Assembly (NCBI RefSeq): GCF_964194025.1
Contig: NC_134475.1
Span: 64,976,001-65,040,000 of the forward strand
Length of the DNA: 64,000 nucleotides
Direction: 5' to 3'
Source of the DNA: Convolutriloba macropyga
Lineage: Eukaryota
Shown here: one piece after another, positions 31,228 to 64,000 of the stretch
Layout: each line of letters opens with the position of its first letter
How positions within the stretch are numbered: the stretch's first letter is position 1
Made by a program: the position numbers and the translations under genes
Notes under the pieces: model-generated
What the model saw: only the letters and a program-made list of their open reading frames with translations
Told to the model about the DNA's origin: nothing
Databases searched by the model: none

Positions 31228-31407
31228 NNNNNNNNNNNNNNNNNNNNNNNNNNNNNNNNNNNNNNNNNNNNNNNNNNNNNNNNNNNNNNNNNNNNNNNNN
31301 NNNNNNNNNNNNNNNNNNNNNNNNNNNNNNNNNNNNNNNNNNNNNNNNNNNNNNNNNNNNNNNNNNNNNNNNNNNNNNNNNNNNNNNNNNNNNNNNNNNN
31401 NNNNNNN
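31228..31407. other. Assembly gap (N run)
   Basis: Run of N. Confidence 1.
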
Positions 31408-39790: not shown

Positions 39791-40742
39791 TACAAAAATA
39801 ACCCCACAAAACACCGTTTTACAAAGTAAACTGCTTGATTTTGAAGTCATTTTTAGTCAGCATATTTTTGTTCGTTTTTTTTTTTTGAATTCTATATCAA
39901 TCAACGCATTGCCATCTGAAGTTTTAGCAGATATATTTTAGGCGAACTGGCCACCTTACTTTAAGAATAAATCCGGATAGGAGTTAGTCAGTTTTCCGTA
40001 AGCAGCCTTCCCACATGAAATCTGTTCAACTTGATCATGCCTCCATAATTTAAGGCAAATTTTTGCATTGTTAATTCAACAAGCTTAAGAGCAAGTTAAA
40101 CAGATTTCACGGACTCAAAATGAAGTGGTCTTTCCCATTATAGCCCAAAAACAACTTAGTTGTCAGATGACCCAAAAATCCAAACAAACTTGGCTTTCAG
40201 AATCAAATTATGTTTGATTTTCAATGCAAACAAAAACCCGAATTGCGTTACAAATATCCGAAAATATAACTCACCCATAACCTGTGAGTAATGATTTATC
40301 AAAAATTGAATTTTTCTTTGTCTTTTAATCAGCTTCAAAAAATTGCTGTTCAGAGCAGTTTTATGAAGCATTAATTTGTGCTTTTTTAAATGATATATTG
40401 GAATTGCTACGTAAATATTGTTGCACTTTTTCATTGGGTTCAAATGAAATTCTGAATTTCCCTCCCCTGAGTTTTTGAAGCTTGCATAGGCTCATCGGAT
40501 GACCAAAGATGAAACAATGCGTATTACAGTAATCCTTCTCCTCATTGCATTTTACTCACTACGATATCTTCAATAGACCACTTCCTAAATTAGGTTCTCC
40601 AAAATTGCGAGCCAAATAAGATCAGAGCAACACTATTTTGATGAAAAGCAGCATAGTTCTGATATGTGATTCTTTTTTTGACTTGTATGATCGCTTAGCT
40701 GGTTGCATAATCAGAAAATATTAAGTAGAAAGCAAAAAATTT

Positions 40743-40882
40743 GGGTCTTTCTCATTATATCCCCCCGCTTAGTGGTCAGATAAACTATAGCCCTCCCCCC
40801 CCCCAAATCATGGTAAGTATACCATAATGTGGGGGAGGGATGGGGGGCTAAAAGTTCAGGGGGTCCATAGTGGGACAGACCC
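40743..40882. mobile_element. Merlin-like MITE (family of 4199-4335, opposite orientation)
   Basis: GGGTCTTTCTCATTATA ... GTGGGACAGACCC; TSD AAAAATTT/AAAACTTT. Confidence 0.75.
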
Positions 40883-42065: not shown

Positions 42066-43763
42066 ATGCTCATTGTACTTATTCTGAGTTTTATGTCCCA
42101 GATAGTCAGTTCTGCAAAGTGGGCGGTTTGCGAGTCACGGTTGCAAAGGAAATCTTCTGACGAAAAATTTACTGTATGTGATATTTGCTATGTTGAGGAC
42201 CGGCCTCTGCAAGGTGCCAAAAAACCGATGCTTAGTTTAATTCATAAAAAAATGCTTACCGAGTTTGATTGCTTTGAATGTCCAAGCAAAATTCCCAAAG
42301 TAGTCCCATATACATTAGATAGCGCCACTTTCGACGACACTATTGAAATGTATTTCGTAACAGGTGATCAGGATTTCGCCGGCATTCTGGCAATTGTATC
42401 GTTTACTAATGCATCTTACGAGTATGTTATCAAAGTAACAGGAGAAGGATTGGGATCTTTGAAAATCTCGGCTCCTTGGATATTTGTTCGCATCAACACA
42501 CCGTGTCTGAAGGAGTTTCCAGCTGTCAAACTATTATCAATGCTCAAAGATGCTTACAAAACAACAATAACTAGCTACCTCATTGATATGGACAACTCTC
42601 CTCTTGAATATCACCTCTACAGTGCTTTGGGGATGCAATTTTTGACTCTTTTTACTTTGCTATCAGTCATTTTGCTTAAAAAGTGCGACCGAAGGCATAT
42701 TGTTTATTCTCTCGATCAGTTCGTTGATTGTAGTCGAACTAATCGTAGAATTGAATTTGGAGTTTACATAGCACGATTCAACAAACTGGCGTCTTTTTTT
42801 GGAGTTTTCTTCCTAATTTTTTTCTCTGTTGCAGTGACAATGGCTCCAATGTTTATTAAGTATTTCTATTATGTTGGATATGGTGTTTGCGGTTCAACTT
42901 CAGTCATGTTTATCTTCGCTCGAATTCCAATGGTGTTTCAAATGAAATGCAAAGTGTTCACGCAAAAATCATACCAAATTGCTTTCATTGTTGTTACAAC
43001 AGCTGTTGGAGCAATTGCAACTCTTATTATTGTTTTATTAAACGATGATACATTTTTCAGTTTCATGAATCATTTCAGTAATATATGCATAAGTGTTCTT
43101 CCTTTTTGGTTTACTTTAAATTTCGTGATCGTAGTTGCACTTCTTACTCATATAACATTCAGAAGTTATGTCGAGTTGGCAATGTTTGAAATCGGGTGCA
43201 TCATCATGGACCAAGTTTTTCGCACCGCTTTCTTCACAAATTACCTTCACGAAAACAAAGAATCGAAACCATTCTTGGATTTTTACTACATGTATGGAGA
43301 TTCATATTTCCAAATAAACCAAGGTTATAAATATGAAAATTCTTCAACAGTACTAAGCAGTTTTGAGCCCCATACTACCGCATTAACGAACCCCTTTGTG
43401 TTTAAATGGCACTGGCATTACGCTGGTTTTGCCTGCCAAATACCCTACAACCGGTTTTACCCAATTTGGTTCATAACAATACCGGGATTTGCACTTCTTC
43501 ATTCCTATCATTACAATGCTGAACAGACTGAAAGGCCATCAAAATTATTTCCAGTTCTTCTTTTCATTGTCGTAATGATAGGTTCAATTGTAGAGGAATG
43601 CATCAGGATGTTCCTTGATTTTCCAATTGCAATTGGAGTTATTACCTTCTCAGTGCTTTCCATGCTTTCACTCCTATGGTTCTGGAGACGGAAAGAAGTG
43701 GGGGACTTTGTGAAGGGTGTGTATGTCTTTGTTTCACGCTCTCATGTATCTTCAGGTACGTAA
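42066..43763 (+). CDS. Signal peptide peptidase-like 2 (SPPL2)-related multi-pass membrane protein, catalytic motifs absent
   Basis: Uninterrupted 565-aa ORF; signal peptide; PA-domain-like ATFDDTIE...AGILAIV; many TM segments; G.IIM, C..PY...ITIPG and WRRKEVGDFVKG resemble SPPL2 GESIM, PFS.LGFGDII.PG and WRRKEMKKFWKG; possible 46-nt terminal intron 43756-43801 (end SSGY*). Confidence 0.75.
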   Translation: MLIVLILSFMSQIVSSAKWAVCESRLQRKSSDEKFTVCDICYVEDRPLQGAKKPMLSLIHKKMLTEFDCFECPSKIPKVVPYTLDSATFDDTIEMYFVTGDQDFAGILAIVSFTNASYEYVIKVTGEGLGSLKISAPWIFVRINTPCLKEFPAVKLLSMLKDAYKTTITSYLIDMDNSPLEYHLYSALGMQFLTLFTLLSVILLKKCDRRHIVYSLDQFVDCSRTNRRIEFGVYIARFNKLASFFGVFFLIFFSVAVTMAPMFIKYFYYVGYGVCGSTSVMFIFARIPMVFQMKCKVFTQKSYQIAFIVVTTAVGAIATLIIVLLNDDTFFSFMNHFSNICISVLPFWFTLNFVIVVALLTHITFRSYVELAMFEIGCIIMDQVFRTAFFTNYLHENKESKPFLDFYYMYGDSYFQINQGYKYENSSTVLSSFEPHTTALTNPFVFKWHWHYAGFACQIPYNRFYPIWFITIPGFALLHSYHYNAEQTERPSKLFPVLLFIVVMIGSIVEECIRMFLDFPIAIGVITFSVLSMLSLLWFWRRKEVGDFVKGVYVFVSRSHVSSGT

Positions 43764-44939
43764 AATTTTATCGGAAACTGTTTTAAATAATTTTATTTCA
43801 GGATATTAGAAAGCCCGTTAAAATTAAATAGCCGTGTATATTGTGTTGACTCAGTTACAAACTATGCCATATTATAGTCAACGTTGTTTTTTTTTCAAAA
43901 ATCTGTGACATGTGCTTGGGGTTTCCAAAGAAAAAGCTAGCAAAAATTGGTTGAAAGTTGGTATCGAAGTTTTAACTGACTGTATGCGTATTTATGATCA
44001 ATTGATGAATAATAAGATGTGTTTTGCGAAGCAAAACACTTCAAACAATGTGAGATTTATTGAGGGTTCTATATTTGGAATCTGGTTTTCTTAAAGTTTG
44101 TGTGTGGTTTTTTGACAATTTTTGAGTATTGTGTTGGCTGTACCGTGTGATCCACTATAGGGCGTTCAAGTTGTATTATGAGAAATTACTGAACAAAATC
44201 GCTAGGGGCTTAATTTTGTATACTTACATAAAAGTACGAAAGATAACTTGCATCGTTTCAGCAGAGGAGAGTTGGTACAATAAACTCCCCTTAAAGTTTG
44301 CCATTGTCTTTTGCTTCTTTACTTACTTCTCGAAGTAATTTGTAACGTTCAGGCAAAAATGTACCAAATCTTATCAACTTCATGGGTTAAGAAGTTTTTA
44401 TCATAGAACTTTCAAATTATGGATCGTGGTCTTCTCAAAAATAGTTTTAAAAGATGGGTAGAACTACAACATAGCCAAAAATGAAAAATCTATGACCGAA
44501 AATTTTCCATTAATGGAAGCTCTATGACTTAAATTTTTCAATAATATGGGAGTTCTATGATTACTACCTCTCCATAACAGCAGAAAAGAGCTATTAAATG
44601 AATCTTGAGTTTTTCGTGATTTCTCGGGAGCTTCCTGAAGTACAAGGAAAATCAGTTTTTACTGTTTCTCATGCCGAGTAAGCAATAATGGAGGCATTTT
44701 TTCCACGACCTGTTATTTAGCTAAAAATAAAAATCCAGGTTAATCCAGGAGTAATGTGGCACATCACAAAAGCAAAGATGGAGGCCAAATAAAAAAAACA
44801 GCACATGAGAGAAGGTTCCTGTAAAGGCACAAAGAGAAGGACATTTAAAAAAAATTGATTAAAATTGACAAAATTTGACTGAAGACGCAAAGAAAATAAA
44901 ACTTATTGTTTTACCATCCTGAAAGATAGAGGGCACTAA

Positions 44940-45705
44940 CCAAACAGCAGGGAAAATGTTGAGCAATTTCCTGACCCAGAAAGTCCTATTATGTTATTTA
45001 AATACTATTGACTTTTTGAGAAACCTTTGACGATATCGCAAAACCGGACATTGTATATCACTTACGCGAAGTTTTCTTAATTCACGGCCAACATTAGCAT
45101 AAAGGACGCTCTTTATACTCCTTTGAACAGCCTAGATTTAGTCGTAAAGAAATGAGACTAATTTTCACATGAAAAAAGTCGAAAAATTGGAGTTTTCGAC
45201 CCACACTGTTTTATGTAACACATCTTTAAAGAATAACCTAATAGAAAAACCTTGGGTTGTTTTACCTTTCTCATGAATAGAAGACACTACTAAAATAGAT
45301 TGGGTCACATTGAGCAACTTCTTGAACCAGGTCCTATAATATTTTTTAAATACGATTGACTTTTTTGAGAAACATTTGACGAAATTACAAAACTTGGCGT
45401 TACATATCCATTATGGGAAATTTACTGAATTCAGGGCCAACTTCAGCCTAACAAACGTTTGGTATAACACTTTGAGCAGCGGAGACTTAGCATTAACGAA
45501 ATGAGACTATCTGTTACAAAAACAATAGAAAAATTGGCTTTTCCGACCTACAACTGTTTTATGTCATATTTTTAGGCATTGAACCAATACAAAAATCACG
45601 GGTTGTTCTACCATCCCTATGGATAGGAGGCACTACCAAAACAGTTTGGGTCACACTGAACAACTGCTTGACCCAGAGGGTCCTATTTTTTAAATACGAT
45701 CAACC
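44940..45705 (+). repeat. About two units of the ~350-bp satellite seen at 5184-7905
   Basis: TTGACTTTTTGAGAAAC near 45008 and 45356; GGATAGGAGGCACTACCAA shared. Confidence 0.8.
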
Positions 45706-45827
45706 CAGGTTACGTTAAACCAAATTGCCTGAAGATAAGATTGGCAAACCAACTCACTATTGTGTTCGTCACAAAGTAGCACTTTATAGGTAGTTTGCGT
45801 TTTCGAGTAAAAAGTATAAAAAACCTT

Positions 45828-45997
45828 GGATCTATTTTGTTTTGCCCCCCCCCCCCCCCCACCAGCTTAGTGAACAGAAATTTTTTATGACCCCCTCCCC
45901 GGCGCACGTGGTATTTTCATACGTAGTAACGTGCTATATAACAACATATAATTTGTAATTGGGGGTCATAAAAACACTGGGGGGATAGAATAGATCA
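45828..45997. mobile_element. Merlin-like MITE (inverted copy of the 4105-4417 family)
   Basis: GGATCTATTTTGTTTTG-polyC ... GATAGAATAGATC. Confidence 0.7.
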
Positions 45998-46570
45998 AAA
46001 AATATTTATCACTTTTTCCAGTAAAACCATTGTTAATAGCAATCAGATATGCAACCAGATTTAGAAAGAATAAGAACCCTCAGCTGTTTTTCCGTTTTGC
46101 GGCAAGCGAACCAAGAAATATGTCTTTTGTGCAAAAATTCCGATTGTAATGGTTTTTAACCTATTTATCAGTGAGCGACCAATTAGCTTGATGTGTGAAT
46201 TCACATTTCCAAAAAAAATATCAGGCAAAATTGGTGCCTGACAGTGACCAATGCTTTCTTAAAAAATTTGTGACAGAAAGTCTTCTTTAAACTAATACTT
46301 TTTGATAAAACTGCCTGTCAGATAATTTCTTAAAATTAGGTCAAAAATCGGTTTCTGTGCCCATATGCATATAAATTTCAGCGAAAGCATAAAACTCAGG
46401 CCGAACAGCTGCTTTTAAGCTCGAAATAAAATAAATATACCACTGAGAGCGAAATTTCATCATACAGTCTCATTTAGCTTTTCATTTTGACAATTGGAAG
46501 ATCAGGGAATTAAAAAACTATTGAAGGTTTTACTGTGGTACTTAGTGATATCTTCTACACTTTGGTTTTG

Positions 46571-46726
46571 TAATCTATTCTGTTTGAGCGTCCCAGTCCG
46601 TTATGCTCCCTGAGTTAGAGAGCACGTTTCATTAAATGGTAAATCGGCACGCAAAAAAGCGCACGTGCGTCAGTCGGGTGCAAATAATTGCACCTAATAA
46701 CCTGGGGGCACAAGCGGTAAAGATCC
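46571..46726. mobile_element. Merlin-like MITE (uninterrupted homologue of 4070-4577)
   Basis: ATCTATTCTGTTTGAGCG...CGTTATG (single copy)...GGGGGCACAAGCGGTAAAGATCC. Confidence 0.7.
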
Positions 46727-48839
46727 CGATTACTGTTACTTCGTGTACTATTCGAACATAAAAGTGTCCGTTGTCAGAACAAAAATTAGTTGCGCGGAAC
46801 GAAGAATTTTTCCCACGAATTTAATTAAAACCGGATTCTGATGTAATTAGAAAGGCAGAACAAGAGCGTAGCTTGCGTTTCCTCATTGAAGCCAAATACA
46901 CTTACATTGGACAAATACCGTGGTGTAAATCTGATTTTTTGGTCAATAGAATCCTACATGATCAAAGAGAATTAATAAGTATTAATAGGATGTTTTTTAT
47001 AGCTGCGAAGCTGCAAGTTGAATTGAGCTATATTGCGGTGCTCTTGGTTTTTTTGGGACTCGACAAGGAGTATTATTTTTCTATCGGTCTTTTTTGCAGG
47101 AAGTAGATTTGTTCACACGGCATTTTGACCTAAAAGCGAAAGTGAGAAAAGCTGTCTTGTTGAACAGATTTTTGCTAAGAGAAAGAAGTTTTTTTGATCA
47201 TGCGCTGCGTTTAGTGAATGACTTTCTGACTTTGGAAAGTAGTTTTTGATTGAATGGCACATATAGATAACCATTTTTAGCCGTTTTCCGTCTAAGTGGC
47301 CCAATTTTTTTTGCTTGTAATTTGTTTTCTTGTAGAAATAATTTTTATTCCATACTATATTGAAATTTCAACCTCGGAAATTGATGCCACAGTGTTTTGC
47401 AGAGCCTGAAAATGCGTTTCAAATACAAAATTGGAACATATTTCTTGATTTTATAGTCAATTTTTCGCTTTTTTGTCTTCTAATTTATCCAATTTTGAAT
47501 CTTTTAGTCGTCTTTTGGTAGTTCGTCCAATTTTGGTAGTTTTTCCAATTTTTGTCTGTTTTTTGTTTGTATTTTGGTTTTAATTGCAAGAAATAGTCTT
47601 TTTATGCAAACTGTTGGACTATAATTCTGTTTCAATAAAAGTTGAATCATTTGTTGGCGTTAAGTTTTTTGAAAAATAGTTAAAACTTTTCATAAATGCA
47701 GTCTTAAAAGTTTTTTGAACTTTTTTTGCAAAATATTTCAATGTTTCGTATTTTTGAATTCTGCTTTTTCCTATTTTTTTGTTCTCTCCAGAAGGATAGA
47801 TCTTTGTATCGGATGACTAGTTATCTTTTCTATGTTTCAAATGCTGAGCAATGAAATGTATTCTTTTTTCTTGATTTTCTTTATTTGATTTTTAACTTTT
47901 AAAAAATCAAGATTTTCCTCTTTACGGTGTTCCTTACATGAAGCCCTTATTCTTCACATTCTATTATATTTTTTTCGGTATTTTGATTTTTTTCAGTTGT
48001 TAAAAATTTATGATTTTAGCTTCTTCTTAGATTTTCGTCATTTCTTTGGTTTGCAATTGATTTTATTCAACAAAAGCCAGTTCTGAGAGTTTGCTATCAA
48101 ATTTTGTTCCAAAATTTTCACTTATTATTATTTACTGCATCTGTCCTCCGGCCTTGGTATTAAATTAAACAATTTTTTGCCTTTGAATATTCTTTTACTG
48201 CTTATGTCTTTTCTGTGATCAATTTAATATCCGAATTAGTATGAAATCTTGTTGTCTAGCAAATGTACAACAAGGAAAAGGTGTGTGTGTTGTTTTTTTG
48301 TCTTAATTGCAGTTATTAGAAGTCCAATAATAGTGGTTTTCTGATTCCTAAATTTGAGCTTTCTTTTTTGAAAAGAGTTAACTTAGTTTCTGAGATTATT
48401 GTCTGCCGTTTGCTTTCGTGGTCTTTTTGAGAATAGAATCATGAATTATTTGAGAGCAATTGATAGCCTTTTCAGCTTGTTCAGCCTCTCAGTTTTTTGA
48501 CCATTTTTATTATTTTGGATTTTTCTAACGTTACAAAACGTTTTAAGTAATATAAGATTTGCTGCAATTTGTTTCTCTTGGTGAGAGTGGTTTAGGTTTC
48601 CCCAATTTTTAGATCAGACCTGGGGAGGTAATGAGTTCAGGGTTTAATACAAAAAGTATTGGCTTCCGCTGCATTTACAGTTTTGTTTGTGAAGTTTTGA
48701 CGCTTCGATTCCCTTCCGGAATTCATCTGGCTATGTTTTTTGTTTCATCGTCTGACGCTCTTTTTCGTTTTACATTTGTTCACACAGCAAAGCTGAAAAA
48801 TTTGAATTTTCTGAATGATTTTATCCTACCAAACGCTTT

Positions 48840-49195
48840 TGCGCGCGTGACGTCATTTCTCACTCTCTTTAGAAAAATTAGTTTGCGTGATTAGATTTTG
48901 ATCACAAGTGACTTACCTCACTCAATAAAATGACTTGTGCACTTAAAAACTTAAGTTTAATTTGATTTTGTTTAAGGTCAAAGGAACTCATATTTGCAGT
49001 ACAGGTCCCTATTAAGAGGCTTCTTCGGGATGAGTTTTAACAAGATTTATTAATTTATCGCTGGATGTTTTATACCTAGCTTTTTGAACCGCGTCGAATT
49101 TTTTTCAAATTAGATCTGTCTCTGTTTCTATCTCTATTCTACGGCATGCAGGTCTATTCTTTCGCAGCTATTCCGGTAATCTGCCGGCTATGTTT
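48840..49195 (-). repeat. Dispersed repeat, inverted homologue of 9405-9780
   Basis: See 9405-9780. Confidence 0.6.
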
Positions 49196-50763
49196 GGAAG
49201 AGTTTATGCGATCATTTTCCCCAAATTCATCAAAAATGCTCTATTACTTTAGAAATCTTCTGTCACTTGAACGCCGCCATTATACCTTGTGATTGGGCGA
49301 GCAAAATTCATCAGTTTGAAATTCCACACATTTGCCAGATTACCCAAAGATAGAATTTTTAGGAAAATTTCCAGAAGTTGAAAAAGGGGGGCTAAAAGCA
49401 GCTCTATAAGAAAAACTAGATTGGCAACAACATCAGCGAAACGGAAATACTATCTGTACACTGAAGTGTCGAACATTATATGCAAAATCTGAACGAGATA
49501 GAGTTCCCAGACATCGCGGATCATCGATCAGTTTTGTCTCTTTTTCGAAACATTTGTTCAAAAACCAGAGCTCATTAACACACTGATAGAAAAATTGTTA
49601 CCGATTGCATTCAAGATAGAACATTTATCAGTATCATAATGAGATTCGACTACTATATATGTCCTAAGCCCCAATAAAGAGGCGAGCTAAACGTCCAATT
49701 ATATGATAAACAATTTCACATAGGTCAAATCTATGCAGCTACAAATACTACAAAATCAACGCAGGCTCTAATTTTCTTTTCAAACTTGTAGATGAAGACA
49801 TAAACAGCATATTTCTATGCACAAATCCTGGTTAAACCAATTATCCGATGAAAACAGCGGAAAAAACGCAACATCAAAGCATAGAAAAGAAGCTCTGATT
49901 GAACGGAGACAAAAAAAATTGTTAACTAGAACGCTGATTGAAATTAGCAAACAACGAATATAAATATATGCAATATCTAGAACAATTTCATATTTTCTCA
50001 AGCCAATAGTATCCAATCAATTCAAAATTAGCAAAACTGAAAAATTAGATTACTAATTTCAACACGCAAACAAAATAATGTTACCAACATGTCCAGTCTG
50101 CACTTAAGAATTCGGCTTATCATTTTCATTAAAATACAATAGAGAATGATTTAGTTCCAGAAAATTCCATATTGAACATCAAAGATCCGAATTACAAACA
50201 GAGTTGATTAAAAATACACCAGCCCAAAAAAACCTCAAAATTCAGATGAATGTCGAAATGGAATCAATCGCTTATTAATATATAATTCCAAATCACAAAA
50301 TGAAAACAACCAGGAGAGCACAGAGGTAAGTGTGCGGCTGTTGACCAGCTTTGCAGAAGTTCTGAGAAATATCGTGTTGGGCATATTTCTACAAAAAAAA
50401 AAATGACCACAGAGTCCCAAATTGAAAGCACAGTTAAAGACGTCACTCAGTTAAACAGAGAACGAGGTCAATAGTGAAGTTAATGAAATCGATTTCAATC
50501 AAAGAGCATCCTTCAACGGAAGCTCGGAGGAGGTCTGTGAACTTAAAATCGCAAAGTGTTTTGAATTAGAGATCAGCTTAGATTTTTTTACTAGTTTAAA
50601 AATGTCATAGATGAATAGTTTTTGATTATCAACACTGGAAGCGTGACATTGCGAAAAATGCAAACTTCGCATGGTGAGGTAAACATACTAAGGCGGACCC
50701 GATGTGGGCTCCTTTTACAGCCTTAAAGTATAAAGAGCTAGGGCTACTTATTTGTGCGCGCGA

Positions 50764-51454
50764 AGTAGACTTTCCTATATCTCTAAGTCTAACCGACTCT
50801 GTAAATTACTGAGAGCAAACTTCTAGTATTACGGTTGTTAAGAAGTGTAGCACTGGAGTCAATGGTATACACGTGGTGTATCTAACTAATAGAGTGACTT
50901 CAGCTAGTTCAGTTCTCTCTATATAAAAGAGAATAGTGTCTTCTCAGTCTCTGATTGGTTGGAAGTGTACATTCAGTATTTCCACTGCTACATCCATCGG
51001 GTTTGAGAGTTTCAAATCCGAATTTTTGAAGTGTAGCAGAAATACGTTGAATGTGTCAAACTCGTTGATGGGTAGGGTGAAGTGAGTGATGAGTTGTGTA
51101 CTCTCTGAAGTGAGTTGTGGCTTGTGTCGTTGCCTGGAATCCCTGTCAGTGAAGTTGTGACTAGTGTCGTCAGTGAAGCGCTTCTTCTGGATTGTAGAAC
51201 CAGGAAGGTTGCCAGTTACAGGGTGTGCTGGCCAGTGACGTCTGTCCTGTTAGAGTATGCCCAACTGCTCTCACTGTCAAGTAGTGAGGATTTGTTCCCA
51301 GTTGGAGGATCCCTTGTAGTCTGTAGTATCTGTCTGGTTTGTACGAGGAGATTTCTGTATATCTCCACTCCACTTGGTACAAGGTTTCAACCAGTCGGAT
51401 TTACCAGCTTACCTTCTGGTGGAAATCCATCGCTTAGCTACTGTGTGAGCTACT
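50764..51454 (-). repeat. Putative 3' LTR (AGTAG...CTACT termini)
   Basis: Preceded on the minus strand by purine tract AATAGGGAA (51455-51463); minus-strand CCAATCAG (~50955) and TATATAG (~50920); left boundary inferred from a 5-bp inverted repeat only. Confidence 0.45.
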
Positions 51455-51722
51455 TTCCCTATTAAATCTATTAGTTAAGATTAATACCTTCTTATTGTAA
51501 GTCCCGACCGGGAGAAAGAAGAAAAGGACTGATCCTAATCTTCAGTCTTGTGGAAAAAAAAGATGATCAAGAGATATAAAACTGGAAAAGAGAAAATGAA
51601 TATAGAAATAAAGAGGAAAAGAAAATAAAGATAAATAGAAAATTACTAGTGAGTTCTTGTGAGAACAGTGAGTCTCTGAGTTTGTGGGACTGTGAGCCCG
51701 AAGTGTGTTGTAGGACTGTAGA

Positions 51723-53600
51723 CTACGTTCCATACTCGAACTGGAAATCTGGTGCGCGATTGTCCGGATCTCTATAGAAGGCGAGGAATTGGGGATCTTG
51801 TGCAAGACAGGCAGCAAGGGCAAAGGGATACAAATCCACGTTGCAGCGGGGTTGCAACGCGAGGAGGTGGTTGAACATTTGCTTCTCTTCTTGTGATGGT
51901 TTGCGGTTAGCCATTTTGTCCACCCTCCAGTCCCTGAAGAGGAGGTTGATAGTGTGTCCGTAGACAAACTTCGTGGCGCCTCCTTCTACGCGTTGTAGAT
52001 ATTCGATCGGGATGAGGATGGGGCGGTTCGTCTTTGCGTAGAGGGGAAAGAAGATAAAGTAATTTTTGATCGGGTTAAAATTACGTAGGGTGCCTTGATG
52101 AAAATTAGGTTGTATAATGTAGCTGTAATTCATATAATAGGGTGACGTGAGTTTAGTGGAGGTGCGAATTCATGTGTATAATCGGATTAGTGTGTTGGAA
52201 GTGTTGTTGTGCAAATAAATAGTTGTGCATGGTGTGGAGCATCTTCACTCTATTCACTTTGTGGGTGGTGTTATTAACATCCATCTGTGTGGGATGTAAA
52301 AAGCCAAATTGTAGGTAGAAAGAATCGTATTTGGCGTAATTTTTTTATGAAGCATTGTCGCGGGTGAAAAATTGTTGAGGTAATCATTTGGGCGATCTGC
52401 AAGAGCAAAAAATTACTTGAACAGATGCCAAAATCGTTTGGTAAATCGGGGATTGAGAGGGAAATGAAGACATTCAAGAGGGAGGTCTCGACATCAGCCC
52501 TCTTGAACATACTCATTTTCAAGCTGTCTCAGAGAACAGGAACTGGCTGTCGGTTTCAAGGTATGTTGAGGTGCGGTTGAAGTGTAATTGATACATTCCG
52601 GTACGTAAATTCCTTGCAGTATTGATGCCAAGGGGATTCGAAAAAAATTGTGGAAACGAAAAATTGGTCCCTGTGAGTGGTGGGAGATGCCTTGTGTCGG
52701 CGCGAAGGGATTTCCTCGGCCACGTGATGATGAGGGCTGTGGGCCTCAAGAAGGACTCGCTGTATGCCGAGCAGGCGATTGTGAAGCCTGCATGGGGGAA
52801 GAGCGAACGGGTTAGGCCTCGTGTGCCGTGGCTCGTGGGCGTCTTCGAGATGAGGGGTCAGTACACGGATAATTAACCATTGAAGTCGGACGATCGTAAG
52901 TTGGTGGTTGCGGGAAAGGCTGTTGAGGCCTAAGAGGTGGTATTGTTGGCCCGTACCGCGCTGAGGATACGGGTGTGTGTCGTGGGTGTAGTGTGGGCAT
53001 GACTTGTGGTGGATAAACCAGTGGCTGCAATCGTGGGCGTAAGCCACGAATCCTACCCGAGTTTGCCCAATTGGGGATGACTGTCTCTGGTGTGGAATGA
53101 CCGGATTGTCCCACTTCATCAGCCCAAGAAAGAATAGTTGTCTGTTGAGGTGGTGGTCGTTGTAATGATACCGTGTGCACAGTAGAAGTGAGTGAGGAGG
53201 GCTGTGATCTTTGGACATGTCCCAGCTCTTGTGACGAGCTGGCATGTCCGATCGCAATCGAGGGCGAGCTCGTGTCACTGTCGATTTACAGGTGAAGTTC
53301 ACCTGAGCTTGAGGAAGAGGTGGCGGGTGAAGGCAGTGGGTTCACCCGCGCAAAATTTGCGGTGTCCACAGACTGTGGCTATGGGGAAAATTGGGCCATC
53401 GTGAAGAGGGCCGGTGTTTGCATTTTGCAAACTGGTTCGGGTACTGTAGGTGCCAGTATCAGTGGAGTGAGGGGTGAAGGCAGAATGTCATTAACCTCCA
53501 GCATGACGACGTCGTATGCCGTAGGGTGGACATTTGGAGGGATTGGTGAGCCTCCTTCCTGGTGGGTGGGGACTGCAGTGGAGTTACTAAAACAAAACAG
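51723..53600 (-). pseudogene. Accessory coding region downstream of env: Pro/Ser-rich N-part plus unknown globular C-part
   Basis: Fragments 53180-52812, 52522-52274 and 52133-51723 and intervening sequence join into a broken long frame ending ...DPDNRAPDFQFEYGT*. Confidence 0.5.
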
Positions 53601-53989
53601 GTGTTAAAGCCGAGTGCTTGGAAAATTAAAAAGGAGTTCTTCTGGGATTTCCTGATAGTCAGCAACTTTTTCAATATAGTCTTGTGAAAAAGAATCTCCA
53701 CGTGAGCGTTTACGCTTTTTGGTTTGAAATGTGTGTAAATATAGAGATTGAAAATCTGGTTTCGTGCGAGAGTCAATTGGTGTTTCATAGCAGTGATAAA
53801 TAGAAGCTAGTAAAGTGGAAGTGTGTCGTTTATTTGTACTATTGTGTACTGGAGAAGAGAATTTCTTATAGAAGTTTTCAAACTTTTTGTGTAATAGATT
53901 CAATTCATTTTGAGAGTGTGGAGTGCAACTGTCAACTGAGTGTCTACGTCGTTTTTATGGTGATGGTGGTTTATATTGTGCGGAATCGG

Positions 53990-56340
53990 TCTGTAGAACA
54001 TGGAATACTGTTTGTGAAAATACGCCAAAAAATCCGGAGGTTATAATTTTAGCCAATGTGATATTGGGTCCTAAAAGTGACTTTAACATATAGTTGTTAA
54101 ATGCACTACGAAATAGGCCAAAAAGACACTGTAAAATATTAAAAAGAGTCCATATTATGGCTATTTCTTTTAATACGTACCAAGGGTATCCAAAGATTCC
54201 TATGAGGGATTCTTTTAAATAGTTGCCATTGATTAAGTCGCGCCAATCAAGACGGCGGAGGGTGAATTCGTTGCCGTTAATAAAGAGTTTGTTATAGTAA
54301 TCATGATATTCAGTGCGTAAGTGTGAGAATTGTGCTTGTAACTGTGCTTGTTTATCGGTTTAATTTAATGCTTGTAATGTGCTTCTTTATGAAATTTTTC
54401 GGCTGCATCATCGACTAATTGGATTAATTTCATCTTGTCTATTGACTTAGTCCAGTCATGTTGACTGTATTTTCCGAGTTGATGCGCGGTAAAGTCTGCC
54501 TGGGTGGAGCGGTTTTCATCTTCGTCAGTCGTGAAAGTTTTAACGGGGTTTCGCGCCTTAATTGGGTAGGGTGTTAAGCGATATGTGTCATCACCGTCTG
54601 CGTCGAGTGAAATTTGTTGATCAAAATTTCCGGATTTACATGGTGCTTTAATAGACCAAGGAAAAGTCTTTCGGGTGACTTGGTCGACAAATTGTAATTT
54701 GTTTTGGTAGTATATAGGAATACGATCGAAGCGTTGATTTTGAAACACATAAAGGGGTGATGAAACAACTTTACTCTGAAAGAGTGAAATTACTTTTTGA
54801 TTTTTAAGTGTGGCGAATGTGTGTCCCTGTCCTGTGATAATATAACCAACAAGAGGGAATTTTTGTGTCAGTAAAATAAAAGCGGTTTTTTTCAAATCGC
54901 GATCTAAGTCACAAAGTTTTTTTATAAATTAAGCTTTTATGATCCATCACGAGCAAGACTCGACTAATCATGTAATCGAGTTTTGCAACGATCTGAACAT
55001 TAGGGTGAACTGCACCAAACCAATTTTGTTTTCTGAATAGCTTATATTTATATGATTTGTGTTATAATTGTGATTCTTGTGGAATGACATATCCATCACG
55101 GATATTTGCTTTCGTGTAGGGTGTTAAAGAGGCTGGTCTTTCAGGGACTATTACGTGTTTTTCATCAATGTCGGGTGACGGTTTTCCCGAGACTAAGTTA
55201 AAACCTTCTCGGTGCTGTATAAAAATATCCTGACATTGGGTGGCATAATATGGGCGATCTTCATTACATTTATAGAGAGGTTTTGTGAGTACATCAAAAC
55301 GTGAAAGTGCAGATTTATCATAAAGGTGCTTCTGAAAACGACTAGAATACATGTGTGGCGTGTTTTTGTGGCCAAAATTAGTTTCGTTGTTTTCAACTGT
55401 TTCGATGAAGTATCGTTTTTGAAAATTAGTCATCCGTGCGTGTGATCTTCCAGCATCAAAAATACGGCAGTGGTTTTTGGGTTCCCAAATGACTGTTGCT
55501 CTAATAGCGTGATTTAGAGGACAGTAGACTGGTTCTAAATCGCACTTAATGCAAACTGTTCCATAGTTCATGTGTTCTGAGGCAACATCAAATTTAGGGT
55601 GATGTTAGTTAATTGGAGTGACAATCCTAGTGTATGGATGACATGATATTCGTGTTCTGGGTTTTTACCGGGACAGTTAGCCCAGGGATTATCTGTGGCA
55701 TTAGGAATCCAATTATGATCGCGTGGGTTATAGACCATGATTCCGTGTTGGAACGCGAAAGGTCTATAACGGTCAAGTCGAAAACGGCCTCGTTTTTCTT
55801 CTATTTTAGCTTGCCAGTGGGGGTCGTCTAATACATCGAAGTGTATCATCTGAGGGCGGTAGTGGTGTTTACTATTGAGACCAACGCGTGCAAGTTCTCT
55901 ATGAGCTTCAATTTCTGAGGGAAAGAAAAGTCTTTCCAGATTATTAACATACCAATTATCGTGGTCAAACCTAAAGCCTCTTTTGAGTGAGATTTTGTGA
56001 CAAAAACATTCCTTGTCGCTAAGTTTAGCAAGTATGGCGTAAGCGCGTACTTGTAGTCTCCGAATTTGTGAAAAGATTTGTACTTGGGCGGGGAAGATTT
56101 GAAAATGGGCCGGCTTGATCTTACATTCGCCAATTTTATTGAGCTTATAATACTGCATATTTGTGATATGCTTTGGGGAACAATCATAATGTGTAACAAC
56201 AAGATCCTTTATGCCTATTTTGGTTGTGGATATATTATGTTGGTCAACTTTAATTGGTTGTTTTGTTGGGAGTGGACATGAAAAAAAATAAATTATGTGA
56301 AAATTAAATTTGTAGTGGAAATGTGTAAGAGAGACCAGAG
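53990..56340 (-). pseudogene. env: env-like class III fusion glycoprotein (chuvirus G / herpes gB-like)
   Basis: THYDC..Y.LNKIGECKIKP...AQVQIFSQ; CIKCDLEPVYC...TVIWEPKNHC; AKLDY..LCDLDRDLKK..L..FPLVGY; RIPIYYQNKLQFVDQVTR..APC; C-terminal TM GYPWYVLKEIAIIWTLFNILQCLFGLF. Confidence 0.75.
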
Positions 56341-56619
56341 TGTGGATTATAGAAGACAAAATATCCTGCTGTGTTTTTCGTGTATCTGTCGAATTTGTAG
56401 TGTATTTCTTGACAAATAAAGAGTGATGGGTTTGTTTTGACTCTAAAGATAGTTGGCGCTGCAGATTGTGGTTGAAAAATAATTTTGTCTTGTTCGACAA
56501 CAATTTCAACAGAGAAAGTGATTTTTGATTGCTTGAGTAATTCGTGAGCCCTTTGTTTTTGTACGGGTGTTATCTTATATGACTTAGATATTCTTTGATT
56601 AGACCAATTATGTAACTGT

Positions 56620-58300
56620 TCACCATTGTTATGGTCTCCAAAGAGGGCGGGTGGAGGAACAATAAACCTAGGGTCTAGTTTTAATGGTCAAGTGGTGTAA
56701 GTTCGTTTCGTATCGAGTTGTTTCCCGATAGTGGTGAGAATGTTGATCTGGATCTGGTGTAGGTGAGTTTGAGCTTAGAGTGATAATCTGCGGTATGCCC
56801 GGAAAGCTGAGCGGTAATGAACTTTGGAACGAAGGTGATGAATTCACTATATTAAAAGAGTGATTCCAGTGTGCTTGTGATAATAAGCGTTCAATGTTTG
56901 TTATCGGTCCTTTTGGTGGATTAAAGGGATTATTCGCAATTTGTGATGGAGTAGGTGAAAAAAACTGAGAACTAATTGGATCAAAAATAGAAGTGTCAGA
57001 AAGTATGCTAATATCACGTGTGGTGTCGTTAATATTTGAAACAGTTTGAATTGGCTGTGGCAATTCTGAACTACGAGTTTTGTCTGTATTTGCAAAATTT
57101 ATCGGTTGAGTGGAGAATTGTGGATTGTTTGAGTAATTAAGTAATTCAAGATGTGGTGCTTGTGGAGAAGCTGGTATAAGTGTGGGTAGAGGAAGTGTTG
57201 TGTTTGGGAGAAAACCAGAGTATGACGATAAAGTTTGTGTGGTTATTTGTTGTTGCTGTTGTGCTTGCGTTTGGTGTATTTGCGTTTGACTTTGATGGGG
57301 GGAGTGGGCTTAACGATTGTGGGCTAAAGTGGTGGGAGTGTCCAGTAAGACGAGGTCTATCTGCAGATTTTGCTGTAGTAATGACTGAGTATAGGTGTTC
57401 CACAGTTTCTTGAGTTTGTGGTTTTTTAGTAAAGATTTTAAATGATGACTTTTTGTGTGTTGTTTAGTCGCTTCGCTGTATGAGCAACTAGGTGATTCTG
57501 AGACGGGGGAGCACTTGGGTTAGTGTTGGATTGTTGACTAGAGGACCCAATTGTGACGATAATCTTTGGCCCAGAGTGGTGCAATTATCGCAATAATAAA
57601 TTTTATAGTGAGTAGAGCTGGGGATAACAATTATTAAGAGATTTAAAGTAGGTATACTTACTCTGATTGCTGCGCAGGGTGATTCTGGTGGGATGACATT
57701 ATGTAGATAGATTAGATCTAAAAAATCAGCAGCAGAAACTGTTATCAATTCAGCAAGTGTATAGTTTTTTAGTCCAAATAAATAGTGTGCGGATATATAG
57801 TTTCATTTGATGTGTTGTTTTATGTTTGACAAGTTGTTGGATTTAATCAACTTGAGGAGTTTTTTTAATGTATTTTATATCATATGAGGCTGGGATGGCA
57901 TCAATATTAACGGTGTAAACAATATCTGTATAAATATTTTCATAATGTTTTGGTGTTGCTTGTGGTGGAAAAATTGAGAGATAGAAAAGAGGAATATTTT
58001 CGTTATTGAAGTCTAAAATATAGAAAACCCATTCACAACAAGTGGGTGAATCTAAGATTTGATCAAGGTTGTAAAAAATATCTTGAAAGCGGACTTGTTT
58101 AGGTTTAAAATTTTGAATGTATCTAAATGTAGACTCGCAAGGTGTAAACAATACTTCGAGTCTATGTTGAGAAGTTATGTGTATACCTGGTGAAATTCGT
58201 TGAGAAGAATGCTTTCAGTGCTGTGAGTCTGAAACTTTGCAGTTGTAGTGGTGTAATTGCTTCTGATAGCTGTTGCATTGGTGATCAAAGAAGTCTAAGA
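56620..58300 (-). pseudogene. Accessory coding region between integrase and env (unknown function)
   Basis: Minus-strand fragments 58151-57843, 57748-57488, 57403-57146, 57063-56668: aromatic-rich globular-looking part followed by a Ser/Thr/Pro/Asn-rich part. Confidence 0.45.
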
Positions 58301-59399
58301 AGTTGAAGAAGTCAAAGAAGCCAAAGAACTGTACTGTGAGATATTTCTTATAGTTAAGGAGGAAAGAGTGAAAAATTGATTTTAAAACTAAGAGAAAAGA
58401 GAGATTTTTCTAAGTTTAGAGAAAGAAGAGTGGAAGAGAGTAGTTTCAAAGAGTGGAGTTGAAAGTTGAGAGAGCGTTTAAGTGAATTTTATTGAAGAAG
58501 AAGAGAGAAGAAAGAAGCAACTAAGTTTGGAGAGCGGTGGACTGAAAAGTGATTTCAGACAATATGATTTTGCCTGACCACGACTTTTTATTCGGTTGCA
58601 AAAAGTTACCGAGTCATATCTTTGCAAATAAATGAGATTAGTGAATTGTTCCCAGACCGAGATGTGGGTCGGTTATTATCTTAATATTTAGTTAGTTTTC
58701 TTTTTGTTATTATCGTGTGGAATGGTCTGTAATTACCTTCTTTTCATTTCCTGATGGAGGGGTTTTTGTGGTTCTGCTAGGGTAGCAGATGAAGAGATAG
58801 TCCGTCTGCTTTGTTTACTGTGCTAAGGGGTTTATTTAACTTTACCAGTGAAAGTAGTTGTATTACGGGGAAGCGTGGTGAAAGAACTATCCGAACTATC
58901 GCTCTCGTATAAGAGAACGAGGGAATTGTATTTTTTTTGAAATTATATTTATTAGCTATTTAGCGGGTTATGCTAAATTGTGTTCGGCTATTTAAAGCCA
59001 GAGGAGTGATCTGGTGTGTATTTAATAGTGAAGTGTGAATGTTTTTAAATGTTAATTGTTCGTGAAGCCGAAATTTTTGATTGTGGTATAAAGACTCTGT
59101 AGTTTTTTATTGGTTGGCGTCGAAGACGATTGTCTCTTTTAGTGTAGTTTTTCGAAGTGTTTTCGGATATTTCAGACAGGTTACAAGGTAACTGAGGGGG
59201 AAGGTTATCTGTGGATGATACGTTTGGATTCTCTAGACTGAACGAGACAGATTTCGGCTTGGTAAGCGGTGGCTTTTTAGAAGTTTTAAAAGTGAATTAT
59301 CAGAGAAGTATTTCTCCATTTGTTCTTGAACGAAGATTTTTTTGGGATAATATAGTACTATATTATTTCTATGACGGGTGTTTTGTTTACCAGAAAAAT

Positions 59400-60800
59400 C
59401 TTCTCGTTTATAAGTGACTAATGTAGGAGTATCAATTATTTTGTAAGGTCCGATATTTTGTGGTTGGATCTTTTTTGATACTCTGAATTCTGTGGCCTTA
59501 TTTACGACTAAAACATAAGTATTTATTTTAAGTGGTTGCGCCGTTCCGAAGTGGCGATTTATAAATGAGCGTAAATGTTTGTTTTGGTTTAAATAATTGT
59601 GTACTTCATTATAAACTTCCGAGTGTATCTTTTCACGATTGAGAAACCAATATGCAAAATTTCATTTCTGTAACTTTTTTGGGGGTTGATGACCTTAGTG
59701 GTCAGTATGTGTATGGTTAGGTAATGAATTACAAGTTGAATTTTCTGTGGGTTTACAGTTCCCTAAGCTATCTGTAGTGGACGATAGATTGAACATTATA
59801 AGTTTCTTTGGTTTTTGACCAAATAATAGTTCATATGGTGAAAAGTTAATATTGGTCCTAACTTGTGAATTCAATACAAACGGAAAAACTTTTACTTTCT
59901 GTGACCACGTGTCATATTGTGAGTCTACGGCTCTGCGAAGAAATGTGTTCAATTGGCGGTTACTGTTTTCATCGAGTCCATTAGACCACGGTGCATATGG
60001 CGTACATGGTTTGAGTTTTACATTATATATACGGCAGAAATGTTTAAATTCTCCGTTAATGTATTCATTTCCATTATCTGTTACCAAAATATCTGGTATT
60101 CCGAATTTGACGATCCAATGTTCAAATATTACTGTGAGTGCTTGAGTGGCATCATTTTTGGTGAAGGGCGGTGTGCAACATAGTGCGCAAATGCGTCTAC
60201 AAAAACATAGACGTGAGAGTTCCCATCGGTGACATTGGACCTTTTGTATCCATTGAAATACGGTGATTGAATTATGGTGAAACTTCTAAAAATGGCTGTT
60301 GTGGTTCCATTAAGATGTTTGGCATAGATTTGCTAGTTTGGCATTTCAAGCAATCTTGTGTAAGTTGCTACCCAAGTATTAATTTTCGGGAAATAGTAAT
60401 TCTCTGGGTTTTCTGCGTGTGTTTTTCACGACCAGGGTGTACTGAAAGATCATGAGAGTGTGCTTTTGTAAAAGATGACTAGGAGAAGAGAGAGTGGTAG
60501 ACAAATTTTTGGTGACGTTGCTTCTTGTATGTAGTACAAGAGATTATTGCTTTCGTTAATATTTAAATTTTTGAAATATCTATAATAGTGCAGTAATCTT
60601 TTGTTCGCTCGTATTGTTAGTGAAGGGTAGGGGAAAAATTTTGTAGCGTTTCCAAAGTAGAAGTTGTCTGAGAACTGGGTCTTGTTGACGCGTTTCATAG
60701 AGAAGCATATCATTTATTTCTGTTTGTTCTTCGTAGGAGTAATTATAGAGAATTGGGGATTTTGGGATGAAATCCTCCATTGCTGAAGGCGAAAATTTCA
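59400..60800 (-). pseudogene. Gypsy integrase (H2C2 region, DDE core, GPY motif)
   Basis: C..C (QDCLKCQ), VFVDAF, LVTDNGNEY, PYAPWSNGLDENSNR, SPYELLFGQKP, IGPYKI at ~59445. Confidence 0.9.
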
Positions 60801-61149
60801 TATTAATTATTAGTTCGGCATAGTTTGCGTCGTGATTAACTTGTGTGAAAGGTACTGCTTTATTTGTGTTTAGTGTAACGTCCGTGTGTAATATGACAGT
60901 GTAAATTTCTGGGAGTGAGTAGTTACTTTTAATTTGTTGTATTTTTTGTTGGTGTATATTATCTCAAGGTTGTGCTTTGGCCTGGAGTTCGTAATATGAA
61001 ACCGGCAGATAAAGATTTTTTTCTAATTGTACTTTGAAATAGTTGTCTTAATCTGTAGATAGATTGGAAAGTGTGGTGATTCTACATGAGTGTCTATAGA
61101 TATTGAATAAATGTATTCTTTTGATGAGGCGTAGTGACATTTGTATAGG

Positions 61150-61690
61150 TTGTGTATTTTGATTGTGTGTCATATAGAATTTAATCGAATCAGATATCTC
61201 AACTGTGCGGAGAAGGTGTTCGTCTTGTGTTGTAGTCGTTAGTCAGCGACTTAATAAATCTAGAAGTGAAAAGTTTTTTCCTTCTGTCCAAACAATGTGT
61301 AAGTTCGGAATTTTCATTAGAATTAATTGAAATTTATAAACTCTGTGGTTTGGTTTATTCTTTTGTGTGAATAAAAATAATATTGGTTTGTGATCAGTGT
61401 ATATTTTTATTGGGTGTCTAGATCCTTGGATAAGAAACTCGTATTCTGAGAGTGCATAGATGACAGCTGAGCATTCGCGAAGAATGGTGGGAAGTCTATG
61501 TTCTGTGGTTAAAAATAGACGAGAGTTTGCTGATACTAACTCCTTTTTCCTTTTTCTTGAGTTCGGGATTGCAAGGCGGAATGTTCCGTCTGTAAATTCT
61601 TTTTTTACTCTATCAACTATTTGTTGTAATTCAGGAGTCCAATTAAAATCTGTTGTATCTTGAAGTTGTATTGTAATGTTGAAAAGCATT
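61150..61690 (-). pseudogene. Gypsy RNase H
   Basis: FNWTPE, SANSRLF..TEHR, RECSAVIYAL, IYTDHKPI, GKNFSLLDLLSR. Confidence 0.9.
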
Positions 61691-61699
61691 TGAGAATGA

Positions 61700-62640
61700 C
61701 TTGTAAATGTATATATATTTTGAAATAAAAGTGAGACATCCTACATAATTTTGAATTTTCTTTTTATTTTTGGGTGTATGTAACTTTAAAAATCCGTCTA
61801 TTTTTGATTTGAGTGAATGTATATGGTTATTTTGAGTTTGATGTCCTAAAAATTTAACTGAATCTAAGAAAAAGAAAGATATATCTGGAGCGGCTTTGAG
61901 GTTTTCATTCTTTAGAACAGTGTGATATTGAGTGAGTGTTTGTACATTGTGTCTGTTGTTGTATCTGGGATGACAAAACCATCATAATAAGTAATCATTT
62001 TGTTTTTTCTAATAAGTGGTTTACAAATGCTGCTAATAAAAGATGAGAAAGCTGCTGGGCCAATAGAAATACCGTAGAATAGGCGCTTAAAACAATATTG
62101 TTGTGCAGCAGTCACAAAATTCGTGAGTCTTTGTGATGGTTTATCAAGCGGCATTTGGTTATATGCACTGTTCATATCAGCTATAGAGAAGATTGGTCCC
62201 TTAATACGTGTTAAAATAATTTTTATTGGTTCTATGGGCCAACTTCATTTTGTTTTGTCAAGGATCGTATTTAATTGACGAGCATCTAGGACAATTTTTA
62301 GTGATTGTCCCTTTTTGAGGTTGATTACTGGGTTAATAAATGTGTTTCCAGTGGTTAAAGAGTCTGTATTTACGGTTGCAATGATGTCAAAATGTGTTAA
62401 TATGTCGAGTAAGTGTTGTACTCTATCTTGTAATTGGAGTGGGATATGAGTAGCTCTTTGCTTTTTAAAGATAGCTGTTGCTTTTAGGGGTAGGTTTAGT
62501 TTTAACTTAATTTTTCCAACATCAAATTTGGAGGTTGAATAGCATTTTTTAAATTTTGTGAGAAGTTATGCTAATTTTTCAAACTGTATATGTGTTAGTT
62601 TTGTGTGTTCAAAATTAAACATGGTGAGAAATTCTGCATC
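61700..62640 (-). pseudogene. Gypsy reverse transcriptase
   Basis: IVLDARQLN, WPIEP, FSIADMNSAYNQM, FKRLFYGISIGPAAF, YYDG (decayed YxDD), FLGH. Confidence 0.9.
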
Positions 62641-62697
62641 TGTTTCAGTGAATTTTGAGACGTTAAATGGTATGGTGAAGTTTTTCTGTTCTGATTG

Positions 62698-63990: not shown

Positions 63991-64000
63991 AGTAGGGTTT

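Follow-up and report, generated by a model that had tools for sequence, protein, structure and literature searches.

Can a membrane protein keep the fold of an intramembrane aspartyl protease, and be maintained by selection, once residues that make such a protein a protease have been replaced? This question is raised by an unnamed gene of the acoel Convolutriloba macropyga, the first coding exon of which lies within a 64,000-nucleotide stretch of contig NC_134475.1 (positions 64,976,001 to 65,040,000), here termed the window. Coordinates are those of this 64-kb window, with 1 its first letter, unless prefixed with G000, i.e., the C. macropyga genome assembly, given as contig:position. An open reading frame (ORF) at 42066..43763 (+) represents exon 1 of a real, selected gene, one whose product belongs to a large, lineage-specific acoel family and is, on balance, probably an SPPL2/presenilin-fold pseudoprotease. 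By pseudoprotease is meant a protease fold from which at least one catalytic residue has been lost in all members, in conjunction with purifying selection, and this is the combination found, the selection as seen with paralogues.

The ORF can be taken as coding since both homologues and selection, as considered below, support its being so. It is a single long frame, beginning with ATG and encoding 565 amino acids (aa), just as an earlier note on this DNA had described, in a window that is AT-rich (GC 0.30-0.46) and in which the remaining ORFs at 41-45 kb are of 60-119 aa each. A 565-codon frame is far beyond chance expectation. An Rfam scan of the window returned zero matches. The existence of the gene is in fact already known, i.e., it is annotated in RefSeq but without a name: By exact-sequence look-up, the ORF protein shares a 90% cluster with XP_075251956.1 and XP_075251957.1, which are 'uncharacterized protein LOC142344269 isoforms X1/X2' of C. 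macropyga.

The relationship to SPP and SPPL proteins resides in the transmembrane (TM) core, and is seen by comparing structures. An AlphaFold2 (AF2) model of residues 181-560, generated without templates from 28 rows that included the 30%-identity subfamilies as well as a second genome, attained a predicted TM-score (pTM) of 0.61 and a mean predicted local distance difference test score (pLDDT) of 63, with TM7-TM9 at 85-94. (A first AF2 model, from 7 close paralogues, was unusable, at pLDDT 38.5.) With the core model as query to Foldseek, human SPPL2a (9k92, 9k93) ranks 1 and 2 in the PDB, and the nearest two clusters of the ESM Atlas are Peptidase_A22B families, with TM-scores of 0.60 and 0.57 versus 0.31 or less for what comes next; one of these two clusters is also 95% PA. 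Over three structure libraries and two aligners, GxGD proteases alone lead the rankings, about 10 Z units ahead of whichever fold follows. The predicted model thus shows the TM core to have the SPP/SPPL fold, closest to that of SPPL2a. The predicted topology likewise is of the SPP type, with the N-terminus luminal, the C-terminus cytosolic, and the TM6-TM7 loop luminal, an orientation which in SPP/SPPL proteins is opposite to that of presenilin (PMC12745688).

What, then, has become of the active site? In the best sub-profile alignment to SPP, which is collinear, GLGD-IVIPG falls on PIWF-ITIPG and RGEL falls on R(K/G)E(V/L). As the second catalytic Asp of SPP/SPPL proteins precedes the Pro of 'xxxPG' by four residues, its position here is that of F469, a column which over the family reads F8/Y7/M2/C1, with Asp in 0/18; there is little or no variation at W468, P473, and G474. 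The distance from F469 to P520 is 51 residues, which equals that of Asp412-Pro463 in SPPL2a (52 in HM13). The catalytic residues of SPPL2a are D351 and D412, 61 residues apart, with Gln462 preceding its PAL (PMC12745688). Within the PAL column of the family, Pro is present in 10/16 sequences, followed at +1/+2 by (I/L)(A/G) and in none by A-L. Two pairings of the earlier note, LGFGD with FYPIWF and QPALLY with DFPIAIG, therefore hold up: YPIWF-ITIPG occupies the GxGD-xxxPG position, in a register that the I-P-G which follows, hhalign, and the 51 residues separating F469 from P520 all fix, and FPIAIG occupies the QPAL position at the start of TM9.

A third pairing, LLYD with LLTHITFRSYV, was mistaken, since residues 358-368 close TM5 and make up the short cytosolic loop leading into TM6. 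The candidate for a retained first Asp instead is D382, found within TM6 (helix 368-387 in the model) in the context I-I-M381-D382-Q383-x-F-R. This residue is the 14th or 15th of the 20 in its helix, versus the 15th in HM13, and its 'MD' is compatible with PhiD, a motif defined as in PMC12745688. Against the assignment, the sole profile alignment, which is non-significant (P=0.12), anchors on G-C-I and sets the Asp of YD opposite variable residue 388. That D382 is the retained first catalytic Asp is accordingly a view toward which we only lean, and the protein, instead of having lost both Asp, may be 'half-dead'. The claim that neither catalytic Asp is present thus stands for the GxGD Asp, replaced in every member, but is not confirmed for the other, given an invariant D382 near PhiD depth in an ambiguous register; this is the same Asp, of IMDQ, that the earlier note had itself named as a possible refuter.

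Missing whichever TM6 register holds are one of the two Asp, both Gly of GxGD, and the A-L of PAL. GxGD proteases require both aspartates, with loss of either abolishing activity. As the second Asp has been lost, the protein most likely is not an aspartyl intramembrane protease, i.e., canonical proteolytic activity is, as predicted from sequence, most likely absent. It might be supposed, even so, that the protein is an active intramembrane protease or some other hydrolase, in which D382 is paired, in place of the GxGD Asp, with E510/E511, where TM8 ends, or else with a loop residue. Consistent with that supposition, D382-Q383 is invariant not just across subfamilies but across two genomes, E510, E511, and R514 are nearly invariant in a TM core that is strongly constrained, and a beta-hairpin is predicted just before TM7, as found in active SPPL2a. 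In every member, however, position 469 holds a bulky hydrophobic residue, a precedent was not found in the literature searched, and both the Gly residues of GxGD and PAL, which active-site conformation requires (PMC12745688), have likewise disappeared. Together with the requirement for both Asp, these points leave the idea of an active enzyme a rather poor prospect, and a pseudoprotease the preferred description.

Loss of the GxGD Asp is a property of a family rather than of the single dead SPPL2 paralogue that had been envisaged, though the loss itself was correctly seen. Searched in six frames with the protein, the C. macropyga genome yields 64 matches, among them at least 11 intact, full-length copies of the subfamily at 50-68% identity, on C1, C7, C8, C10, and several unplaced contigs. 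Divergent subfamilies exist as well, i.e., on C12 a member of 30% identity (P0011/P0147) and on C9, C15, and C2049 a subfamily in two pieces, and the same search finds, on C16 at 16.72-16.80 Mb, tandemly arrayed copies interrupted by stops. That array, at G000:C16:16,724,000-16,803,000, holds about a dozen decayed copies of 27-63% identity and with many TGA, TAG, or TAA codons, next to which is a less damaged one at 16,724,650-16,726,297, where no matched piece has more than two in-frame stops. The array has the appearance of a gene graveyard, one recording birth-and-death turnover. At the other extreme is, among the intact copies, an inverted, near-identical pair located about 85 kb apart, G000:C10:34,799,849-34,801,537 (-) and 34,885,746-34,887,434 (+) (L013, L011). 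Their divergence, nonsynonymous (dN) 0.009 and synonymous (dS) 0.020, indicates very recent duplication or gene conversion.

An exhaustive hidden Markov model (HMM) search of 1.84 billion representative proteins yielded 17 matches, all of them of the family itself and zero of them A22 proteins, and a metagenome scan found no family relatives. Three homologues (P0018, P0020, P0150, on contigs of ENA ERZ25071366) are at most 34% identical to anything in the C. macropyga genome, and for that reason must come from another genome. They nonetheless retain CDLCYV, VYVARLN, IIMDQ, YTLWC-VFVPG, and WRRGEL. That the remaining ENA homologues might be other-species orthologues was rejected, most being from C. 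macropyga itself, with P0001 and P0013 identical to C. macropyga translations, and P0001, P0002, and P0011 having RefSeq C. macropyga proteins as cluster-mates.

Selection was gauged from paralogue comparisons only. Pairwise Nei-Gojobori (NG86) dN/dS is 0.14, 0.14, 0.23, 0.28, and 0.31 at dS 0.19-0.23, these being the informative pairs, and is about 0.09-0.15 for the focal gene versus the paralogues closest to it, for which dS approaches saturation. By this measure the TM core is under strong purifying selection, and the suggestion of a gene maintained intact by selection is supported. The family, that is, is lineage-restricted, to acoels, turning over by birth-and-death, and under purifying selection.

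A number of results weigh against the reading as a pseudoprotease with the SPPL2 fold, and these are gathered here. The Pfam model for Peptidase_A22B, PF04258, is unmatched at E<=10 by the focal protein and by 28/28 members; the same HMM finds the canonical genes of the C. macropyga genome at 263, 62, 43, and 40 bits. Searches of the PDB, both with phmmer and with family profiles, were empty. When the family profile was compared over its full length, by hhalign, with 30 diverse HM13 proteins, P was 0.26 and the alignment was out of register. Sub-profiles did better, with P=0.01 for TM7-9 and P=0.04 for the C-terminal half, and with column-shuffle nulls reaching the sub-profile scores in 1/60, 7/60, and 2/60 shuffles; the pieces were, however, picked by eye after the motifs had been seen, and these marginal P values are not counted as proof. 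The core model is of moderate quality, with loops below 50 pLDDT, and the comparison made is at the level of the fold. Public runs over the ORF are pieces of paralogue contigs, 80-90% identical, none of the listed runs being on record as RNA, and just two 151-nt exact pieces come from 'organism B'. The invariant TM6 Asp and the invariant acidic E510/E511 leave space for non-canonical catalysis. Lastly, the binding of clients, the binding of PDZ domains, and sorting, all of which enter the mechanism proposed below, are purely inferential. Language-model atlas searches with the whole protein, with residues 335-565, and with residues 17-184 gave nothing usable, an atlas match to TMEM117 at 0.76 having been discarded as below the stated noise level.

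In light of these results, the SPP/SPPL likeness might be seen as convergent, or as an artefact of modelling, with the proteins constituting an unrelated, orphan nine-TM family, as the silence of the profile searches would allow. Against this is that three libraries and two aligners placed only GxGD proteases on top, with that gap of about 10 Z units, and that topology, TM number, position of the luminal loop, xxxPG, the 51-residue TM7-TM9 spacing, and R(G/K)E(L/V)..F all are collinear with SPP/SPPL proteins. An unrelated family is therefore very unlikely. An SPP/SPPL fold is instead retained as the reading, and the family is one that is placeable by structure prediction only, being invisible to Pfam and HMM searches. 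The earlier proposals of an SPPL2-type TM core and of A22B similarity thus succeed at the level of fold and fail at that of sequence (Pfam, PDB, hhalign).

The protein also differs from what the ORF alone would imply, as the ORF is not the whole of the coding sequence. Past '...SRSHVSSG' the RefSeq proteins (models P0143/P0144) continue as '...ASGYRTNSQFS...PVYEGPRYHVLQRQ...PVRWRR...HETQV', whereas the 3' end of the ORF in the window reads '...TCA G|GTACGTAA'. As this RefSeq tail differs, and as a near-consensus donor (GTACGT, at 43756) is found directly 3', the exon ends at 43755 and the in-frame TAA at 43761-43763 is intronic, i.e., the ORF extends to 43763 solely through reading into the intron. 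The acceptor of exon 2, '...tgcag|GT GCA AGT GGC', restores Gly-Ala-Ser-Gly in phase 1, and the full product, from two coding exons, is about 645 aa. Homologues of the tail exon number 12, each 1-59 kb downstream of family members and with cag|GT acceptors, and ETQV is the C-terminal end in 4/4 of those translated. The annotated 5' ends raise a separate matter. Counted along the ORF (window 42066-42227), the first residue of RefSeq isoform X1 is Met55 and that of X2 is Met159, both consequently being without the signal peptide, and the RefSeq model of a paralogue, P0145, starts with the residue that corresponds to Met1. The 5' ends as annotated for LOC142344269 probably are truncated.

These exons bear on how the gene arose. 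The earlier note had viewed it as nearly intronless and so suggestive of retroposition, and a processed retrogene, or cargo borne by a transposable element (TE), with a frame that is open fortuitously or transiently, might be thought in keeping with TE-rich surroundings and with a long single exon where second-genome homologues are multi-exonic and one subfamily has an extra intron. Neither suggestion survives. A conserved phase-1 intron and tail exon accompany 12 family loci, nucleotide similarity between paralogous loci ends exactly at the borders of exon 1 with flanks that are unrelated, dN/dS is well below 1, and two RefSeq isoforms have been modelled. The idea was on these grounds rejected as largely refuted, particularly by the 12-locus tail exon and the unrelated flanks, and may be regarded as highly improbable. 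Since more divergent members (C9, C15, C2049) carry an extra intron near residue 335-345, and a second-genome homologue has at least 4 exons, introns have been lost from exon 1, yet the gene is no processed retrocopy; family growth is by DNA-level duplication.

Features of the gene and of its product are collected in Table 1. By prediction the architecture is that of the SPPL2 group, i.e., signal peptide, luminal domain of about 150 aa, nine TM segments, and cytosolic tail. As one part of the reading favoured here, the protein is thus probably a type-I-oriented glycoprotein, with a signal peptide, a Cys-containing ectodomain of about 167 aa, nine TM helices, and a cytosolic tail of about 105 aa. 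A signal peptide had been anticipated and a hydrophobic, signal-like stretch is what residues 1-17 supply; in the subfamily alignment a hydrophobic N-terminus is followed by a conserved (N/K)W(A/G/S)(V/I)C(E/Q/V)(S/T). Hydropathy and charge predict K/R-rich loops 205-238, 286-304, and 540-565 to be on one side of the membrane and sequon N425, in loop 386-466, to be on the other. Most of the long TM6-TM7 loop is of low pLDDT. The supposition of a PA-like ectodomain was not sustained: PF02225 (PA) has zero matches at E<=10 in 28/28 family members, which is a test of sequence only, and the sole model to cover the ectodomain, at pLDDT 28-67, is too poor for fold comparison. At the cytosolic end the WRRKE..DF.KG-type motif is present as predicted, in the form WRRKE..F.KG, and is conserved in the family as W/K-x-R-(K/G)-E-(L/V/I)-x-x-F-x-x-G, with SRSxVSSG kept across subfamilies up to the exon boundary. 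The tail exon then contributes a conserved YH(V/L)L, a putative sorting signal of the YxxPhi form, and ETQV, a putative class-I PDZ ligand by its form.

Table 1. Features of LOC142344269 and its predicted product (res, residues)
Feature	Coordinates	Strand	Basis
Coding exon 1 of LOC142344269	42066..43755	+	res 1-563 plus first base of Gly564; RefSeq models run past ...VSSG into another tail
Signal-peptide-like N-terminus, MLIVLILSFMSQIVSSA (res 1-17)	42066..42116	+	hydropathy peak; putative cleavage
Luminal/extracellular ectodomain (res 18-184, ~167 aa)	42117..42617	+	alignments: conserved C22, C38, C41, C69, C72; CDxCYV; sequon N115-A-S
Nine-TM core (res 185-540), predicted presenilin/SPP fold, N-terminus luminal, C-terminus cytosolic	42618..43685	+	nine hydrophobic segments and predicted model
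M381-D382-Q383 in TM6, candidate retained PhiD aspartate	43206..43214	+	D382 and Q383 invariant, 18/18
Long luminal TM6-TM7 loop (res ~386-464, ~80 residues)	43221..43457	+	sequon N425-S-S, TNPFxFK, conserved C457, predicted short beta-strands
Degenerate GxGD-xxxPG, Y465-P-I-W-F469-I-T-I-P473-G474, start of TM7	43458..43487	+	hhalign register, column counts
Degenerate PAL, F519-P520-I-A-I-G, start of TM9	43620..43637	+	column counts
Juxtamembrane cytosolic segment, W540-RRKEVGDFVKG...SRSHVSS(G)	43683..43755	+	resembles SPP '...RGEL..F' end, RGEL aligned in register
Phase-1 intron, 59,066 nt, first 20.2 kb in window	43756..64000	+	donor GTACGT; contains TE-rich DNA
Exon 2	G000:C8:65078822-65079066 (= window position 102822, outside window)	+	~81 residues, end ETQV, then stop

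What might such a protein do? As the SPP/SPPL fold is present, the GxGD Asp is lost family-wide, PAL is degenerate, and the gene is maintained, a non-proteolytic, iRhom-like role is, by analogy, the most reasonable reading. The SPPL2-type membrane cavity (D382-Q383, R386, E510/E511, R514) would have been kept as catalysis was lost, and that cavity, purely by conjecture, would bind the TM segments of client proteins. Ectodomains would then have diversified among paralogues, giving rise to a set of receptors or adaptors for TM segments, and the tail, via YH(V/L)L and ETQV, would couple clients to sorting or scaffold machinery, on the model of iRhoms and Derlins. The proposal fits with the tight, non-cleaving binding of membrane proteins that has been reported for SPP (PMC2860808). 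More tentatively, and with the odds somewhat against so full a version, this acoel-specific clade of more than 15 genes could derive from SPPL2 and be the first natural, expanded clade of GxGD pseudoproteases, with a substrate-docking cavity and one buried Asp-Gln surviving the loss of catalysis, its members being TM-segment receptors or adaptors tied to PDZ and sorting machinery via ETQV, i.e., an aspartyl counterpart of the iRhoms.

An alternative use of the fold, one without protein clients, would be as an ion leak, channel, or transporter, or in lipid handling. Invariant charged or polar TM residues (D382, Q383, R386, N352, E510/E511, R514) would suit such a use, and the tunnel of SPPL2a does span the membrane, along TM2/3/5/6/7 (PMC12745688). 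A variable, Cys-containing, glycosylated ectodomain in combination with birth-and-death expansion is, though, more typical of receptor or recognition families than of transporters. We consider this alternative unlikely, if less so than retained proteolysis, and a receptor- or adaptor-like pseudoprotease to be the better account.

The same genome also possesses SPP-type genes of ordinary appearance. SPP, on C5 (L002), has FYD, GLGDIVIPG, QPALLY, RGEL, and KKDE, with a KKxx end, and an SPPL3-like gene on C7 has GLGDVVMPGLLLCF. SPP and SPPL3 are single-copy, intron-rich, and catalytically complete, at 60-67% identity to SPP of other phyla. A divergent SPP-like gene is found at G000:C10:46,262,805-46,263,542 (-) (L005), with 'NILGMGDVIIPGFLVVH' and 'SAQPALVFIIPICLPTILITAALRKEF', and so retains the catalytic-site motif of TM7 and that of TM9. 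It has two recognisable exons, GMGD..IPGFLVVH and QPALVF...ALRKEF, and against the family HMM shows nothing better than E = 0.19, at TM7; it may be this acoel's active enzyme of SPPL2 type. PF02225 has three exon-level matches in the C. macropyga genome, none adjoining an A22B locus.

As for the surroundings of the gene, very high-copy repeats at 40667-40833 and 44341-45500 flank exon 1 on either side, with a summed contig word depth of thousands to tens of thousands (runs X1, X3) versus about 2-100 over the gene. A long terminal repeat (LTR)-type retroelement occupies the minus strand of window 51000-64000, inside the 59-kb intron, with several ORFs of 130-430 aa and, at 61243-61689 (-), an RT_RNaseH domain (E 7.6e-14). 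GC skew is positive and strong from about 50 kb to the window end, and N runs are at 4984-5183 (200 bases) and 31228-31407 (180 bases).

Among known systems the closest is SPPL2a and the PA-bearing SPPL2 group (Peptidase_A22B; MEROPS A22B), with which the family shares fold, orientation, and overall architecture. Unlike SPPL2a, the family is without sequence similarity that Pfam or HMM searches can detect, and has P-I-W-(F/Y/M/C) for GxGD, MD at best for YD, and P(I/L)(A/G) or nothing for PAL. Its TM6-TM7 loop is about 20-26 residues longer, its ectodomain is without a PA signature, an extra tail exon ends in ETQV, and a single genome holds more than 15 genes. With the SPP/HM13 and SPPL3 of C. 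macropyga the family has in common fold class and topology, and TM7-TM9 aligns in register with SPP, but their sequence identity is absent as is the second Asp. Presenilins and archaeal PSH (MEROPS A22A) are further removed, with structural scores lower than those of SPPL2a; presenilin lacks an ectodomain, needs partner subunits, and is oppositely oriented in the membrane, as already mentioned.

The likeness to iRhoms and Derlins is one of concept, i.e., of a protease fold that is kept and selected, with catalytic residue(s) lost, and with luminal and cytosolic domains added. The folds themselves are unrelated, serine versus aspartyl type, and where iRhoms are ancient and conserved across animals, the acoel family is known from two genomes only. 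iRhoms and Derlins are central regulators of trafficking and of ER-associated degradation. Their action depends on recognition of client TM segments (PMC3149277, PMC7618786), just as is proposed here. A literature search for SPP/SPPL pseudoproteases found only rhomboid examples and studies of catalytic mutants, and we found no described equivalent in the presenilin/SPP superfamily; what appears to be new is the assignment to a fold, the finding that GxGD has been lost, the expansion of the family, and the actual structure of the gene. If the reading is correct, then the presenilin/SPP fold, like that of rhomboids, is recruitable for non-proteolytic work. The family documents as well rapid birth-and-death evolution in Xenacoelomorpha, a lineage that is phylogenetically important and poorly annotated, and potentially supplies a natural 'substrate-trap' scaffold with which recognition of TM helices by SPP/SPPL proteins could be studied.

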